A DNA stretch of 61,848 nucleotides, filler included, from Platydemus manokwari (taxonomy: Eukaryota): NCBI GenBank assembly GCA_037951405.1. It is 6 parts of 6 records of this genome, joined end to end, with 100 filler letters (N's around TTAATTAATTAA, not from the genome) between each part and the next. Parts side by side here need not be neighbours in the genome. Positions count along the whole stretch, not along the records: positions 52,356 to 61,848 come from JBBMOY011241207.1; 5 more parts are not named here. One strand, written 5' to 3'. Numbering within the stretch: the stretch's first letter is position 1; the number at the start of each line of letters is the position of its first letter. Shown here piece by piece: positions 52,356 to 61,848 of the stretch. A program made the translations under genes and the position numbers. The notes beneath the pieces were generated by a model that was given only the letters and a program-made list of their open reading frames with translations, did not search any database and was not told where the DNA came from.

Positions 52356-52913
52356 TAAAAATGAAATTTAAATTAAATTAAGATTTCAAATCCAAATTAA
52401 TGAATTTTTACAAAAAACACTAAACGAAAGGATTGATAACTTATAAATAAATAAATAAATAAATAAATAATAAAATAATTAAAATAAATTTAAAACAAAA
52501 CGAAATCTAAATCAAATAATTATTACAAAAAGATTTTAAATTAAATCAAAGTTTTTTAACTCAACAAATACTTTTTTGTTTTAACAAATTAATTCAATGG
52601 CACAGAAAAAGTATAAAAATCTAAAAATAATAAAATAACAATTATTCTATGCTATTATTATATAAGGCAAGCAATTATAACGAATTGAAAAGTCATAACG
52701 CACAAAATAAATTTCACCAAATTAATTATTATATTTTTATCATTAATTCTTAATTTGAAACCTTTTAATATTATTTCATTTTCAAATCCTCTCAGTCATT
52801 ACTATAAATTCTTATTCTAAATTAGTAACAAACATTTTCGAAAAATACGATTTTATCAAAATTATCAAATAAATTACTAAAAATAAACATCATGAAAACT
52901 ATCGAGATATTAA

Positions 52914-53970
52914 TTATTCTATTACAACAATTTTTGATAGTTTCAACCTTAACATTTCCCAAGTTACTAAACGTATAATAATAGCTTGGCGTAAATTAGT
53001 TTTTTGAGAGAAAATTCGATGATTCGAAATCTTTAGGAAAAAATTCATGGGTGAATTTACAAAATAAGTTTTGAAAGTTTTTATGAATTCCATAATGATA
53101 GGTTGAATAAGTGAATTTGAGATTTTAGGTAAAAATAATAACTTGATGGTTGAACAGTTAAATGATTTATGGCACGCATTTTTTGTTGAAAAATATAAAA
53201 CTGTGAAATCTTTAAAATTAAAGTTTCTCATACATCGGGGATTTTTATGTTTTCCAATAATAAGTAGTTCTAGCTTTTCGCCTTAAAATTAAGTCATGTT
53301 TTCTTTGATTTATTTTAACTCACAACAAAAGATTTAGGTGGATGGCTTTTTTACAAATAATACCGTTTCATCACAATTACATTATCTGAAGATTTGGTTT
53401 CACCACAGATGTTTTTGAACAAAACCTTATGTCTTGATTTAAATCAATCTAACCAACCGTTAGACTCACAAAATCTTTAATAGACATTTTTGAAGTACTT
53501 TTTCCAATCATTTTGAGTACTGTCCCGTTCTCTTAATTTTAAAAAAGTTTCGAATATCATTTTAATTAAAGCACTGAAATTGTTTGATAAATTATAATTT
53601 ACCTTACATTCTTCTTCAGAAATATTATTTATTCTGTTGTTTTCTAAAACTGGAACAATATTTTTTCGAATTCTTGAAATAGTTCCTTCTCTAGTTTGAT
53701 AATTATACAAAATTTCTTCTCTGACATCTCTTCTTTGAGAGTGAGTTTCTTCATCATTATAAAAAAATTCAAAAATACAGTATTTTAAACGAATATAAAT
53801 TCAATGAAAATCACTAAAAGAATAATTATAATTTCTTTAAATAAATACCCTGAACAGTTAAGTTCTTTAAAACAATGACATAGAATAGGAAAATCGACTT
53901 TTCAAATTTTACCTCGAAAACCGAGGGTGCCCAATATCCTGGATCTGTCCGAAATCGGGGACCGACAGTA
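52914..53970 (-). mobile_element. Decayed pogo/Tigger (CENP-B/DDE_1) DNA transposon
   Basis: FVESNGWLD*FKSRH (CENP-B HTH), NCDET-like motif near 53370, and NACH..IKLLFLPKISNSLIQP..IKTFKTYF (DDE_1), with stops and frameshifts. TIR-like TA-CTGTCGGTCCCCG at ~53970. Confidence 0.8.
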
Positions 53971-56406
53971 CAAAAGTTAATGCTTTTATAAATTAATTGT
54001 AATTAAATATATGAATAATGATAAATAAAAATCTTAATAGTCAATCAATAGCTATTTAAATCTTAGTCAATATTAATTTTCAAATATATATAAATATTAT
54101 ATAAATTTGGTAAAACGAAAATAAACATAAATAATGAAAGATGGGAGAATTATAAAATATTAGATAATCATTAACATTTATCTAGACGGCATTTTATAGA
54201 TATGAAATTAAAGATTGAGAATTATAAGATTATGTCTATAATATTTATTAAAAGAAATGAAAAATGATAGAGAAATGCCTAATGATGGATTAATCTATTA
54301 AATAACGGGAAATATGTTCTGTAAAACATCAGTTTTCGACACTTGCAATCGGCATAAAATGAGTGGTGATTATGTAAATTATTCATTCAAACGCGAGACA
54401 GCTCTCTGGAGTTTGGCTCGCATTCTCTTCTAATAAACAATTATCAAATTCAAATAATGTTCTATAAATGGAAGTCAAGTCTTCTATTAAATTAAATATT
54501 GTTCAAAAATCGAAAAGTTGTATTAGTTTCATATGATGTTATATTGTCGAATGATTCAAAGAAAAACAGAAAGAGAAAATAAATTACTTGATTCCTAATA
54601 TTGTTTGAAAAAATAAGTATATATATAGAGGGGGCAGGTACAATGGTAACGATTTTTATGTTGTATTGTGTTGTGTTGATGTTGTATTGTGCTGTATTGA
54701 AACAATTAGGTTGTTTCTGTCTCAAATCCTTTAAATTAACGTTTAAATTTTTTGTGTATATTGTACTGAAATTTTGTTTCACATTTTCATTTAATAAATA
54801 ATAATTATAATTTAACTAATGTTTTATAAATAAATATGTTAATCTAAAGAAATTGTTCTATTCTCCAATTTATTCAAGATAAAAAATAAAAAATCATTGA
54901 AATTTTATAATTAATTACAAATTATTTAATTTAATTTTACTTAAACTAATCAAACTCAATTGTTAAAATATTATTAAATATAAAATCAAAGTTATTATTA
55001 TTAATTTTCACCACATTTATTAGAATTTCAGTTGATCAGTGAGAATTCCTGAAAAACAAGACGCTTATTCAATAATTATTGTTTCAAATAATTTATTAAA
55101 ATAAATTAAATTTAACATGTATTTTCTTGTTTAAACTTTTAATAAAATTGGGAACATCAATCTCTTACATTATAATAAATAATTTTCAAAACTAATTCTT
55201 GATAAACTCATATCTGCAAGATAAAATTAAGGCGTCTCACAATTGCCGTGAAATCATTGACAAGTATTTTTACTGTCATATCTTGAATTATTGGTCAACG
55301 AGCTGAAGATTTTTAGAAAATCGTACGCAAATTGTTCACGATTTGTCATATCTGCAAATGTGCCATTGAGATGATTCTAAAGTTACACAATTGTCTGATT
55401 GACAAACTAAGGGAAGACTCGATGACATGGATGTGAACCACTGTTTTCTCATAATTTTCTCTTCTTACAATTTGAGAATTACAGAAATCATTTATACTCT
55501 CTCAGTTGGCATTCTATTACTCGCGTTTTATGATTCACCTCAATTGTTCGAGTTTTATACCTTTGAGAAGGTGAACAATCAGGTTAGAATAACTCAAATT
55601 ATGTGAAATACAATGTCATGTCAAGTTGAATTAATCATTGATCTCTGATACATCATGATTTTTAAATAACGCCATAACCATATGTTGCCGATGTGTCAAC
55701 AAAGATTTAATTATAGAAATTCACAAGAAAATAAATCCTAAATTTTAGTTTATTTTTTATGTATTTATATTTATCACAATATTTGTAAATCATCATAATT
55801 AATTGTAATAATAAGTATTCAAGTATATTTGATTTNNNNNNNNNNNNNNNNNNNNNNNNNNNNNNNNNNNNNNNNNNNNNNNNNNNNNNNNNNNNNNNNN
55901 NNNNNNNNNNNNNNNNNNNNNNNNNNNNNNNNNNNATGTATTTATATTTATCACAATATTTGTAAATCATCATAATTAATTGTAATAATAAGTATTCAAG
56001 TATATTTGATTTCAATTCCATTTTGAATCTAATATAAAAATTGGCATTTATTTCTTTATTTAACATTGTATTTAGAATAACACTTATTCGAGCGTTCACA
56101 ATCGTGTTTAACAATTATAATTACCAACTATAATTTGGATCACAAATAAATTGAACAGGTCGTTAAGAAAATTCCAATAAAAACTCAAATTGGAATTGAA
56201 ATATAATTTATTCAAAACTAAAAAGAAAAATTCGTTTTTAACTTAAATAATAGTTATAATGTACAAGAATTTATTGTTTTCGTTATTTCATTTATCAAAA
56301 ATAGTTCGTTTAATAAAGAACTAGTGGATTAATTTAATTATTAATTACATAAATATCAAAATTTTATGATGAAAAATGAAAAATATTTTATTATTTATTT
56401 TTATTA

Positions 56407-56712
56407 TCATGGTTTCTGTAATTCATTAATCTTCATAGAAGCGACATTCCAGTTTTCATTTTCTGTTATATTAGAAGCACCTAAATCGTGAAAGATATCA
56501 TTCAAACTGTCTCCTGGACTGTACCATAGAATAGCAACAACATCATCAATGTAAATTGTTTTAATTGCTTTCATTATGTATTCGGTAGTTAATTTGTGAT
56601 AATCACCAACAAAATCAGTAAATTTTATGATCAATCCATGCCATGAATTGAAGCAAATTTGTAAAACAAAAGAACACAGCCATTCACTGTGAGGATTTGA
56701 GCAAGACACTAG
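56407..56712 (-). CDS. In-frame extension after UGA-CUAG: second, degenerate SSAT-like domain (101 aa), candidate readthrough product of 290 aa total
   Basis: ..ATC AGC TGA CTA GTG TCT.. continues in frame: FNSWHGLIIKFTDF (compare SSAT YDPWIGKLLYLEDF) and FHDLGASNITENENWNV (compare FYKRRGASDLSSEEGWRL). Ends TGA TAA TAA followed by AATAAA. Confidence 0.7.
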   Translation of the reverse strand, partial: LVSCSNPHSEWLCSFVLQICFNSWHGLIIKFTDFVGDYHKLTTEYIMKAIKTIYIDDVVAILWYSPGDSLNDIFHDLGASNITENENWNVASMKINELQKP

Positions 56713-57279
56713 TCAGCTGATACCTTTTTCTATAATATTATTGGTAAAACTCATGTTGATTTTACTACAGCGATTATCATCATAATTGTGAATCAAATTC
56801 CTCACAGATTCCTGTCCGAATAATTCATAAATTGTTATTCTATCTTTGATAGTAGAAATATTAATAAAACCAAAACTCATATACATTTTCTCTAATCCGA
56901 ATATTGTCTTATCGAATGTCAGTCTCAAAAAGTTGATATTGTTTTTCAATGCTTCAGTTTTTAGATGATCCATCAATCTTCTACCCAATCCCTTGCCCCG
57001 AAGTTCTGGTAATACAAAGAAATCATCGATGTAATACCCATTGCCATCTAATATGGAATACTCTTCCAAATACAATATGTATCCTACAGCTGTCTTTTCA
57101 TCACCGCTTTCATTGAACAATATCAAACATTGAAAATCTCGTTCTTGAAATGATTTCAACATCATGTCCTCTTTCATCAGAAAGTATGGTGTCATACCAA
57201 TATGGCATTGGACTAATTTTTGAGTGAAGGAATAAATTGTTAAAATATCATTGTCAGTAGCTTTATAAATTTTAAACAT
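56713..57279 (-). CDS. Spermidine/spermine (diamine) N-acetyltransferase-like GNAT, 188 aa if terminated at the first UGA
   Basis: MFKIYKATDND, FQCLIL, VGYILY..YSILDGNGYYIDDFFVLPELRGKGLGRRLM (motif A; compare SSAT LYLEDFFV..RGFGIG), EKMYMSFGF. Confidence 0.85.
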   Translation of the reverse strand: MFKIYKATDNDILTIYSFTQKLVQCHIGMTPYFLMKEDMMLKSFQERDFQCLILFNESGDEKTAVGYILYLEEYSILDGNGYYIDDFFVLPELRGKGLGRRLMDHLKTEALKNNINFLRLTFDKTIFGLEKMYMSFGFINISTIKDRITIYELFGQESVRNLIHNYDDNRCSKINMSFTNNIIEKGIS

Positions 57280-60200
57280 GAAAATAGATATTTTAATAAT
57301 ATAATAAGTTTTTCAAACAAATTTTCATTTATTTAAAATATTTATTAGGAAAAAATTAATTGTTAAAATTATTTTAAAATTATTTTAAATTTATTTTATA
57401 ATTTATTAATAATATATATTTATTATCTTTAAATAATTTTTAATATTTTAAAAAATAATTTAAATTATTTTTATTTTTTAACTTTTAAAATTTTTAATTA
57501 AAATTTAAATAAATACTTGAATGTTGCATTCGATTTATGTGATTCACAAGTTGGATCTGGTCTTAAAATAGCTTCTGCGGTCAGAATATTGACAACATAT
57601 GCTTATTTTATTGTAATTTAATTTAATTAATTTAATTTAATTAACTTATCACTCTGAGTCATCTTGAATAATATCATCATGGATATATGATTCCGATTTT
57701 TATATTCTGATTTACAGATGGATAATATTGACGACAATAAGATAAGAAAGAAAATGTTTAACCTTTCATTGTGAAAATAACGGCCCAATAATTAAATTAA
57801 ATTGCAATGACTGCATTTGAATGAGTTAATTGATATCACGTAATATATTTACTCAACCAAGTTTTTCACTGAAATGAGGAGAGAAAATTTTATTATAATA
57901 GAATGATAGAATAGTTACTATGCGATAGACAATTAATTTGACGTTCTCAAGGTTGATAAATTGCTAGACAAAAGCCGCTACTAACGACGAGACTGCTGTG
58001 AATTCATAGTTTGAAGTTACCGAAAAGGTGTGTTAAAATATTTAACCTTAAGATTCTTTTACCAAATATAGCGCTTTAAGAGTGAAGATGTGATTTATGT
58101 ACTACGAATTTGTGGTTATTTATTTTAATCCCTCCATATTCATGGAAAAATCGTGTAAAATGAATTATATTTATGAATAAAGTTTAAGTTAACATGATTT
58201 CCAGTCATCTGATTAATGGAATCAATTCGGAATTTGAGATTTTCAAATAGTGGATTTATGCGAGAGCATGAAGCCTTCTAAAAAATAAATCATGTAGTAA
58301 TTTTGTAATCGATTACACGTAAATTGGCCTGATCATATATTGGTTTATGTTATCGATTTGGCCTATACCTTAAAAATTTATGTATATTAAAAGATCAAAA
58401 CCCAATACCATTAAGTAATAAGTTCATTGATGCAAAGAAAGCCACTCAGCGCTTTCTTAACCCAAAATAAATCACAATTCTCTCAAAATGGTTTCAAAGA
58501 GTCTTATTTACAATATAGTCTGTAATCATAATTTTGCTAATCTTTTATTCAATGAGCTATTTACCGTGATTCCAATTAGATTTATTGATTTATCGTGACC
58601 GATGTATCTACAGTTATATGGTCACCCAATTGAAATATTTGTAGTACATTGTTGATTAATTCATCTGTTTTCGTTCATATATGACATTGTGGGATTGCGT
58701 GAGTATGAAATATCAAAACATTAGTTCGACGGTAGCAAAAGTAGTTATTTCTATACTGATTTTTAAATGCAATGATTAAAAAATTTTGAAATATTATACT
58801 GTATAGAGTTACTTAGAGCTATCTGTTAGATATTTTAATCTGATTAGAAAAAATCGAAATCAAAAAATTCCAAATCAATATTTGTGAGTAAAAATGCATT
58901 AAATTTCCACGATTTAACAATTTTTCGATATGATTTAAAAAGCATCATTTAATATTAATATAAAGTCTTGACATTTCTCAACGAAGTCGGAGATAAGCTC
59001 GAATTTTCAAACTGCACAGGTTTTGTGGAACTTTTGTAATGCCAATTCGTATTGGCCAAATTAGTAAACACCAGATGAGAGTGGAATTATATATTTGATA
59101 TCGTATTTAGCCACCGGGGATTTCAGTTTCCAACTATTCCCAACGGATAATTTGGCTCGTATAATTCAAGCTGTTGTTGTGTTGTCAGTTTTTATATACA
59201 TATCTCTTGCTCGAAACAACTGAATCAAGTTCATCAGATAATGGTATCATAAATTATACTCTAAATGGTTTGATAAATATTTATTTGACCACAACGCTCT
59301 ACGTAGACATTGATAATAATTTATCACAATTTCCACCATTTGCAATCATTTTCATAATTAATACAATCATCATTCCGATGGATTTTGATCAAATATGAAA
59401 AACCAATTTAATTGAGTTTTTAATTCTTTCATTATATTTAATTAAATGTTAGAAAATATATTTTTTTAAATGAGGATTACTTGAAAGGCTTGTGAAGTTT
59501 ATTTTTATACTTTAATTAAGAAATGTAATTAAGATATACATTATAAAAACCAGAAAACGACTACTAAATTGTTTTTCTTCAAAGTTTATGTGGGATGTAC
59601 TTATGGAATTATTGAAGCGATTAAGTTTTATTAGGTACCACTTAATTAACGACCATTCGGGATTAATGGATNNNNNNNNNNATTTATTTAGATTCAAAAC
59701 CATTTAGATTGACAAAACTGTAGAATATTCTTTCCGAAAATCTTATTGATGATGAATATAGGATGGATATTTTAGATGAATTATCTTTACACATAAAACC
59801 GATATTTGATAAACCAATTCTCCATGATAATACATTCTAATAAACAATGATAAATATAAATTATTGCGAAGTATGGAAATTCTATTCATCAAATAGTATT
59901 AAAAGTTGGCATATTAAAAAGAAACTTTTGAAAAAGAATTTTAAAAAGTGTTAATCTTTATTTTTAGAAAATCAATAATATTTTACTTAAATCAAAATAT
60001 AAAATAAAATAGAATATTTTAGAACATTTGTTCAAAAGAATTACGCACTATTACGCACCAGTTAAATCTGGATTAGCTAATTCTTGCATAGCCGGTAATT
60101 CTTTTGATTATCATCATGATTATCTTTTATATTTTTAGCATTTACTTTATGTTTCGTTGCGATTGTCAGACGTACATTTTATTCGGTTTCGAGTATTTAC

Positions 60201-61848
60201 AAACCATATTAAGGGTACCAATAGTGTGATGATTGAAATATTGGTAACTCCAACTATATTGGTAATCCATCAATAAATAGGTTCGCAATCATATCTATTC
60301 ATCAGTGTCCGGTGAGACCTTGAATTATTAAAACTAAATTTTTAAAATCCGAAAGCAGTATCATTCAATCAATATCACCTTATCGAATTACTGGTTCGGA
60401 GTCACAAGATGCAAATGGGTATTTATTTTTATATTCAGCCGATTCCTAACATATATTATTATTATTATTATTTTATACGATTATGATTATTATTACTACT
60501 TTATATTATTATTATAACTCTTATTAATATTATCATTAAATGAGGAATATAATGTCAAACAATTTCAATGTCAAGAGATTTCAATATATTAAAATATCAA
60601 TTTTATATTTGGGGCAATATTTTAAACAAATCAATAAATTCCATTCCAAATCAATGGGAATCAAGTCTTTAACAAATATCGAAAATTTAATGCCTCCTAT
60701 TTTATTGAGGAAATTTTCGAAAATTTATTTTATGATTAACTTTAATTTTGTTTTTATCGTGAAAATTAAGGAAAGAATAGTTAAATAATCTTTATTCATT
60801 TTTTATGAATTATAAACATGATCTCACTATGTTCCTTTATTAATATTCGTATATATATATAGGTGTGTGATATAAAATTGCTTATAAAAGTAAAATGATT
60901 ATTATTATAAAATAATAATTATTATTTATCGATTATATTTAAACCTTCTGATCTTTTTTATTAAATTAGTTTGATGATCTTTTGCTAAAATATGGCAGGT
61001 TTAGAATATCACCATAACCCAATAAATATATACAGAGCTTTAAAGAAATAGGAATCTGTAATCAGTCTACAAAACGAATATATCAAAATCAAAGTGATCT
61101 CAGCAACTTCACGTTTAAATTAGATTTTGTTCCTTCCTTAATTTCTTTATATGATTTAAACGGAAACTTTTTAAACACATTAAATTAATCGTAAATACAA
61201 TTTATGGCTTACCGTTTTTTTTAAATTGAAGATATAATCAGAAATTAAAGTTATCATCAAAGTACAATAATTTTAGGATATCCGATCTAAATATAAATTA
61301 TTGTTCGTTATTCATGGTATTGTTTATCATGGTCTGCTTTATCCCAATGACATGAGACCATCGAATTCCATATTTCTACTTTTAAACATCATTCCAATCT
61401 GATTGGATCAATAATTATAATGTCACAAGAATAAACATTATCACGATTTCTTATTAAGAAAGAAAATATTTATATGGTAACAACAATATTGAAAAGCACT
61501 TAATTTTTTATAAAGCATTTTATTTATTAGAGAAGGCTTGTGCTAATTGTGTAAGATAAATAAATTAACCCAAAAGTTACAATCTAGATCAGTGATTCCC
61601 AAAGTGGGCACTGCTAGGATCCAGAGGGTTGGTGGTGAATACAAGCTCATGTAAGAAAATTATTAATAAAAATTTTGAGAGTCCAATGTTACAAAATTGG
61701 TAGCAGCAACACCAGGTTCATCCTTCTCATTAACATAATTTTGAGATTTTGAATTAAAATCTATTCTAAGCGCATTAAATATGTTCTTATTTTCAAAATC
61801 CATTGTTTCTACCTAATTTACATTTTTGTTAATATATCTAATGAAAAA

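Follow-up and report, generated by a model that had tools for sequence, protein, structure and literature searches.

Comparative sequence support for probable programmed UGA-CUR readthrough in an intronless two-module acetyltransferase gene

The DNA analyzed here, a stretch of 61,848 nucleotides from the Platydemus manokwari assembly GCA_037951405.1 (the whole stretch is referred to below as the window), carries on the minus strand of its last piece, JBBMOY011241207.1, an acetyltransferase gene with a stop codon inside its reading frame. A single minus-strand frame runs from the ATG at 57279 to the stops at 56409-56401, and its sole interruption is the TGA at 56715-56713. The scan for open reading frames (ORFs) placed 188 codons upstream of this TGA (56716..57279). 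An earlier note on this DNA had described a TGA between two minus-strand ORFs of one frame, followed by CTAG, and this layout was confirmed: the TGA, which is the proposed readthrough site, occupies 56713..56715 in the DNA and recurs in relatives, and the CTAG lies directly 3' of it (56709-56712). The extension beyond the stop comprises 101 codons (56410..56712) and is predicted to form a GNAT-like module without the acetyl-CoA loop, as judged from alignment, the ratio of nonsynonymous to synonymous substitution rates (dN/dS), an AlphaFold2 model, and fold matches. It ends in three consecutive in-frame stops, TGA TAA TAA (56401..56409; TGA at 56407-56409, TAA at 56404-56406 and 56401-56403). 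Three AATAAA hexamers (56387..56405; individually 56405-56400, 56399-56394, and 56392-56387) overlap and directly follow these stops, so that the 3' untranslated region (UTR) would be very short. The context of the final stop is UGA-U, unlike that of the internal one, UGA-C. The gene has no introns.

The upstream 188 codons encode a complete GNAT domain of the spermidine/spermine acetyltransferase (SSAT) or thialysine acetyltransferase type (approximately residues 1-160). After it come a linker of low conservation, the opening strand of a second module, and an invariant K-G-I-S turn. Residues 44-138 of the upstream ORF (56866..57150, minus strand) matched the Pfam family Acetyltransf_1 (GNAT, PF00583) with an E value of 2.2e-13 and 50.9 bits, against a cut-off of 20.7. 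The sequence R-G-K-G-L-G at residues 94-99 (56983-57000) fits the R/Q-x-x-G-x-G/A pattern of the acetyl-CoA loop, aligns with the R-G-V-G-A-G of thialysine acetyltransferase, and is invariant across the clade of relatives described below. By sequence, the best solved relatives of this first domain are thialysine and spermidine/spermine acetyltransferases (12jc, 2fe7, 3bj7, and 2bei; E values from 1.4e-8 to 1e-5). Similar structures, 8yv7, 2f5i, 2fe7, and 2bei, headed the fold matches of the model built for an uninterrupted homologue, P0012 (Z of 16 over 151-158 residues, root mean square deviation of 2.1-2.4). Domain 1 thus shares with SSAT1/2 and thialysine N-acetyltransferase the GNAT fold, the R-G-K-G-L-G loop, and the Tyr in the helix-4 motif, but identity is only ~16-25%. 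SSAT is a homodimer of single-domain chains, whereas the protein of the present gene would carry, in cis, a degenerate GNAT-like module behind the first domain.

A protein search with the 188-residue piece returned two metagenomic proteins, each exactly 188 amino acids long and 53-56% identical to the query. On both contigs (L001 and L002), automatic gene callers had split the locus into a 188-amino-acid gene and, after it in the same frame, a second gene of 94 amino acids, and the DNA of both has the in-frame TGA followed by CTA. Searches with the extension added two partial members, L003 (TGA CTG) and L004 (TGA CTA G). Together with the window, these four metagenomic contigs make up a clade of five sequences from four different samples. 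Identity of the four relatives is 42-55%, and pairwise values across all five sequences are 42-70%. The TGA sits in the identical column and frame in 5/5 sequences, flanked by K-G-I-[ST] on one side and L-[IV] on the other; none of the four metagenomic relatives has TGC, TGT, or TGG at this codon. Recurrence of the column, frame, and flanks in four independent contigs is, from the alignment, far in excess of chance. That the TGA, its flanks, and the surrounding nucleotide block are common to five sequences from four samples excludes both an error of assembly and a nonsense allele of recent origin. Scanning metagenomes with the domain-1 alignment recovered L001 a second time and, besides it, only an unrelated, 26%-identical GNAT protein, and a protein-atlas search returned only generic bacterial GNAT clusters.

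Several features of the individual contigs were recorded along the way. AATAAA hexamers similar to those of the window lie 25-40 nt past the stop in L002 and L003, and additional in-frame stops stand behind the final one in the window and in L001. L002 and L004 both come from sample ERZ27257134, are 46% identical, belong to two deep subclades, and both retain the TGA; they would represent either two species or two old paralogues of one genome. The start of the L003 contig (L003:1-47) seems chimeric, its first ~47 bases resembling what we take to be an Illumina adapter fused to the gene, and only bases from 49 on entered the analysis.

The codons beyond the stop behave as coding sequence. The ratio of the proportions of nonsynonymous and synonymous differences (pN/pS) was 0.21-0.61 in the extension compared to 0.21-0.55 in the upstream part, with synonymous sites saturated (pS of 0.67-0.85). 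For the pairs where dS was computable, dN/dS in the extension was 0.11-0.36, much as in the upstream domain. By these measures, the extension is evolving under purifying selection, in line with what the earlier note's proposal implied. Thirty-seven of its residues are invariant among three sequences, and the conserved motifs include C-x-F-V-x-Q, N-S-W-H-G, F-[ST]-D-F-x-G-D, and E-x-W-N-V-A. Conservation starts at the first codon past the stop (L1, S5, N6, and C13 onward are invariant). A start codon common to all members is missing from the extension: the Met found near the stop in L001, L002, and L004 is replaced by Trp-Leu in the window and by Ile in L003. Given the lack of a conserved start and the conservation from the very first codon, translation must enter the extension from upstream.

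Constraint around the stop also extends to the nucleotides. The 12-nt recoding context in the window reads ATC AGC TGA CTA (56710..56721, minus strand), and the DNA alignment gives the family consensus ATC AGY/ACC TGA CTR. The stop and the codon after it are TGA-CTA in four sequences and TGA-CTG in the fifth. The ATC codon two positions 5' of the stop is kept in 5/5 sequences, at an own-gene codon usage of 13-32% (joint P of ~2.5e-4), and the CTR codon just 3' of it is likewise kept in all five, at a usage of 17-39% (joint P of ~1.8e-3). Retention of both codons against codon usage points to selection at the nucleotide level. UGA-CUA is an experimentally validated, efficient readthrough context in four mammalian genes and in alphaviruses. 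A small hairpin can be drawn at 56708-56721 (minus strand) and in the same columns of L001-L004, with the stem ATCAG/CTNAT and the stop in the loop [C/T]TGA; it is perfect in L003, where CTA is changed to CTG, and has 1-2 mismatches in the other members. This hairpin is too short to affect a ribosome positioned on the stop, and it may simply have arisen as a by-product of context conservation.

To place the stop in its evolutionary setting, we turn to homologues in which it is absent. Seven proteins with both modules in one ORF came from an exhaustive profile search that started from the extension and from a subsequent search in which one of the matches served as query. Six of them are ~400 amino acids long, and the seventh is a 663-amino-acid model from Calicophoron daubneyi, in which the modules occupy residues 270-663. 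Two of these proteins carry a trematode designation in their source: CAL8070392.1 of C. daubneyi and "acetyltransferase, GNAT family" of Opisthorchis viverrini, residues 34-434 of which are encoded by one genomic exon. For the alignment and tree, the two pieces of each interrupted sequence were joined by an X at the stop. The corresponding residue in the uninterrupted proteins is Arg in six and Lys in one, and it is the first residue of a hydrophobic strand that is itself conserved, [R/K]-L-[V/I]-x-[V/I]. The earlier note had set the stop opposite a Cys of domain 1, a pairing for which this column offers no orthologous basis. Four of the homologues were read at the DNA level, and their codons at this column and the next are CGA-CTT, AGA-ATG, CGA-CTG, and AGG-CTT, which places TGA-CTA one C-to-T step from a CGA-CTN ancestor.

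All five interrupted sequences group on a single branch of the maximum-likelihood tree (support of 100/100), and the path lengths within it are 1.4-2.2 substitutions per site. Given the single branch, the long internal paths, and the saturated synonymous sites, a single old origin of the TGA, maintained ever since, suffices. By this comparison, the two-domain protein is not itself new; its uninterrupted form is ancestral and is present in trematodes. Two of the homologous gene models carry additional sequence at their N termini. Residues 1-269 of the C. daubneyi model (P0008, CAL8070392.1) place a Methyltransf_11 domain ahead of the two-module acetyltransferase, and the O. viverrini model (P0013; L006:965-1063) has 33 extra residues, from an exon 2 kb upstream, before the conserved Met. 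Both additions look like gene-model merges rather than true architecture.

The AlphaFold2 model of the 101-residue extension of the window, built from a 12-row alignment, had a mean predicted local distance difference test score (pLDDT) of 84.6 and a predicted template modeling score (pTM) of 0.75, with the element order strand, strand, strand, helix, strand, helix, strand, strand. In VIA-align, nearly all of the 50 rows were GNAT proteins (Z from 8.7 to 6.6, with 80-100 of the 101 residues aligned), and the top 50 Foldseek matches were mostly GNAT as well (E values from 7e-3 to 0.13, probability up to 0.98). The matches map the extension to strands 2-7, with helices 3-4, of the GNAT fold. A Z of ~8 is barely above the background stated for VIA-align, and the argument for a GNAT fold therefore rests on the homogeneity of the lists. 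Sequence-based comparisons were negative: Pfam gave no match to the extension at E<=1, hhalign of module 2 against domain 1 gave a nonsignificant probability of 0.2%, and the module 2 profile found no GNAT protein at E<=10 in the PDB. On reading the sequence, the extension is without the R/Q-x-x-G-x-G/A loop, and Phe replaces the Tyr of the M-Y-M-S-F-G in domain 1. Taken as a degenerate GNAT-like module, the extension is supported by these models. Of the second, degenerate SSAT-like repeat proposed earlier, the GNAT-like fold and the missing loop and Tyr held up, whereas the hhalign result does not demonstrate a repeat of SSAT type by sequence.

The model of P0012 (pLDDT of 75, pTM of 0.75) shows how the stop lies relative to this fold. 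In it, a module 2 strand at residues 195-202 precedes the strand that starts with the Arg (239-246). In the window clade, both this strand and the K-G-I-S turn come from codons 5' of the stop, which therefore breaks into module 2 itself, past its first strand and just where the second begins; it does not fall between two domains as had been supposed. Single-domain chains of solved SSAT and thialysine acetyltransferases can be aligned with the P0012 model for 151-158 residues, in a range that reaches residue 380, within the last strand of module 2 (residues 365-380). Domain 1 may therefore need module 2 to complete its sheet, and the two modules may be intertwined in the manner of SSAT subunits, with strand sharing or exchange. 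Tandem-GNAT single-chain enzymes in which one half is inactive include mycothiol synthase MshD, N-myristoyltransferase, and MAB_4324, and 7q3a was among the fold matches of the P0012 model. The likeness consists in two GNAT-like folds per chain, one of them without the acetyl-CoA loop; the differences are that no sequence relationship was detected and that module 2 here is without helices 1-2. We know of no such enzyme (MshD, N-myristoyltransferase, or MAB_4324) that is split by a recoded stop.

The observations above are probably best explained by programmed UGA-CUR readthrough of one intronless two-module acetyltransferase gene, to which we assign a probability of roughly 0.65. The ancestral gene would have had an Arg codon where the second strand of module 2 begins, and this codon would have become TGA, most simply by a change of CGA to TGA before CTN. 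Most ribosomes would then terminate at the UGA and release a 188-amino-acid product consisting of GNAT domain 1 and an orphan strand. Some would decode the UGA with a near-cognate tRNA (Arg, Trp, or Cys), aided by the leaky UGA-C/CUA context, and the added 101 codons would give a 290-amino-acid protein equivalent to the uninterrupted trematode enzyme. Because module 2 stayed under selection, the 290-amino-acid form must be made and must matter; it would be a functional or differently functional enzyme, and the stop could act as a throttle or switch on its level. Without introns, a stop ~300 nt before the true end of the gene need not trigger exon-junction-dependent decay. Readthrough of UGA inserts Trp, Cys, and Arg in yeast (PMC4150775), and since Arg can be inserted, some of the readthrough products would bear the ancestral residue. 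The earlier note's central claim, of a genuine stop with coding sequence behind it for which readthrough is the best explanation, therefore stands on the TGA in the relatives, the purifying selection, and the fact that introns ending at the CTAG are not shared. Overall, the comparative support makes this a strong candidate case of programmed stop-codon readthrough.

Several points weigh against this interpretation. The stop-bearing clade consists of only five sequences, two of them from one sample. The UGA-CUAG motif invoked in the earlier note is conserved only as UGA-CUR, the base after CUA or CUG being G in just 2/5 sequences (CTA-A occurs twice and CTG-A once). Downstream of the stop, nothing conserved or stimulatory was found by way of RNA structure, with fold z-scores of -0.03 to +1.5 and 0 compensatory pairs. 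All sampled words of the stretch were present in one public DNA sequencing run, which may be the source sample, and in none of the RNA runs. Finally, a complex prediction for the two pieces of the window, which bears on the single-chain pseudo-dimer suggested in the earlier note, scored 0.35 compared to 0.00 for the best control, with a partner pLDDT of ~34 and runs agreeing in at least 32% of contacts. Of the solved complexes, 51 of 78 attained the score mark, as did 2 of 108 mismatched pairs; passes at or below 0.60 are more often wrong than right, and the prediction was not counted as evidence.

We weighed readthrough against other ways of accounting for the stop. On the sequences at hand, splicing, selenocysteine, codon reassignment, and RNA editing each fail at least one test. 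An unlikely alternative is that UGA is read as sense throughout the lineage, through a suppressor tRNA(UCA), a weakened eRF1, or context-dependent reassignment, in which case the 290-amino-acid protein would be made with little or no 188-amino-acid product. The very long retention of the stop and the ancestral full-length architecture agree with this, as do the TAA TAA behind the final TGA of the window and the second TGA behind that of L001, which would suit an unreliable UGA terminator. However, the terminal TGA of L001 stands in the exact column where L002 and L003 have TAA, which speaks for its use as a stop. All 13 Trp codons are TGG and all Cys codons are standard in the five genes, and TGA occurs once per gene despite a G+C content at third codon positions of ~0.3. 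According to the earlier note, other genes of this genome end in TGA. No tRNA gene was found within 52356-57362, a region of only ~5 kb, and we know of no nuclear UGA reassignment in animals.

Editing of the UGA to UGG (Trp) by A-to-I conversion in some transcripts would yield the same two products as readthrough, and it explains the conserved TGA, the coding extension, and the conserved local nucleotides equally well. The hairpin with the [C/U]UGA loop, drawable in most members and perfect in L003, could be cited in its favor. Nevertheless, we consider editing quite improbable: there is no stable or conserved duplex around the site (z-scores of -0.03 to +1.5, no compensatory pairs), ADAR substrates normally need far more than a stem of 4-5 bp, and the ancestral residue is Arg or Lys rather than Trp.

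Removal of the stop within a very short in-frame intron ending at the CTAG has little to recommend it and is very unlikely. The earlier note had listed in-frame GT..AG candidates of 57, 42, and 15 nt ending there; they are present in the window, along with one of 60 nt, and the 57-nt candidate begins with GTAAAA, but they are common to none of the relatives. More generally, no in-frame GT/GC..AG intron is shared: L004 has GC-start candidates only, L003 has none of <=120 nt, and the single 84-nt candidate of L002 would remove invariant residues. The GT of the 15-nt candidate is GGA in 4/4 relatives, and the CTAG itself is replaced by CTAA or CTGA in three of them. The codons flanking the stop are conserved at the protein level with synonymous changes. 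Introns are otherwise absent from the gene, and its Opisthorchis homologue consists of one exon.

It is just as hard to believe that only the 188-amino-acid protein is made and that the extension is conserved for a noncoding reason or translated independently. The 188-amino-acid ORF does have a complete-looking GNAT domain and is called as a separate gene automatically. Against this stand the codon-level purifying selection with saturated synonymous sites, the absence of a conserved start codon, the conservation of extension residues from the first codon past the stop, a confident protein fold, and homology of the extension with the C-terminal module of the uninterrupted proteins. That the UGA encodes selenocysteine is scarcely credible: the in-frame UGA is conserved and had been aligned in the earlier note with a Cys of domain 1, but the Rfam models of the selenocysteine insertion sequence (SECIS) gave no match at E<=10 in 55960-57300 (including 450 nt of 3' flank) or in L001-L004, the poly(A) signals, only tens of bases past the final stop, imply 3' UTRs that could not accommodate a SECIS, homologues have Arg or Lys rather than Cys at the UGA column, and the position opens a beta-strand in a module without the catalytic loop.

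The surroundings of the gene were also surveyed. A decayed fragment of a pogo/Tigger-type DDE transposase lies at 52917-53282 on the minus strand (Pfam DDE_1, E value of 1.3e-10, profile positions 98-168 of 177). At 55707-56114, the same ~25 codons (K-S-N-I-L-E-Y-L-L-L-Q...) are found on either side of a run of 100 N at 55836-55935; bordered by a direct duplicate, this gap has the appearance of a scaffolding error, or of a tandem repeat that was collapsed there. Elsewhere, the piece (52356-61848) is very AT-rich, with a G+C content of 13-35%, and is without another clear gene able to show UGA usage.

Many cases of conserved readthrough have been documented in insects, vertebrates, fungi, and viruses. 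Among those of Drosophila, kelch, headcase, and a set from comparative genomics have long extensions that bear domains. The gene described here resembles kelch and headcase in its conserved in-frame UGA, its long constrained second ORF, and the two products predicted per mRNA; it differs in gene family and probable phylum, and in that the ancestral Arg can be inferred from uninterrupted homologues. Genes with UGA-CUA readthrough show long evolutionary conservation and coding constraint past the stop and do not need downstream RNA structure (PMC4132726). Like the vertebrate UGA-CUAG genes (OPRL1, OPRK1, AQP4, MAPK10, MDH1, and LDHB) and the UGA-CUA of alphaviruses, the present gene keeps CUA after UGA and is constrained beyond the stop. 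Unlike in those genes and viruses, the fourth-base G is not conserved and the stop lies inside a domain. What is added here is a 101-residue folded module, ancestrally within the ORF, rather than a short tail or a targeting signal. The case fits the known class of conserved UGA-CUA readthrough genes, as far as comparison of sequences goes. It appears to stand apart in its gene family, in its probable lineage (flatworm proteins being the nearest uninterrupted relatives), and in the inferred conversion of an internal Arg codon of a folded module into a recoded stop. A search of the full-text literature found no paper on readthrough in an SSAT-like gene or in flatworms.

A further and unlikely possibility, related to the polyamine-dependent ratio suggested in the earlier note, is that the UGA serves as a metabolite-sensing valve. 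Polyamines modulate decoding at recoding sites; if they increase UGA-CUA readthrough, polyamines in abundance would raise the amount of a full-length, polyamine-acetylating enzyme. The 188-amino-acid termination product, being without module 2, would then be inactive or differently active. If true, the valve would be a catabolic counterpart of antizyme frameshifting, derived from the conversion of an Arg codon in a folded domain into a stop.

In annotation, a single recoded coding sequence of 290 codons is the appropriate call for this gene. As a short, intronless gene whose ancestral sense codon is inferable, it would offer an unusually clean comparative case, and with the stop placed within a folded module, marked structural differences are expected between the two products. 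For studies of UGA-CUA readthrough in a non-model animal, the gene may serve as a natural reporter of compact size, and it allows one to ask whether catabolic enzymes of the polyamine pathway, too, are regulated by recoding.

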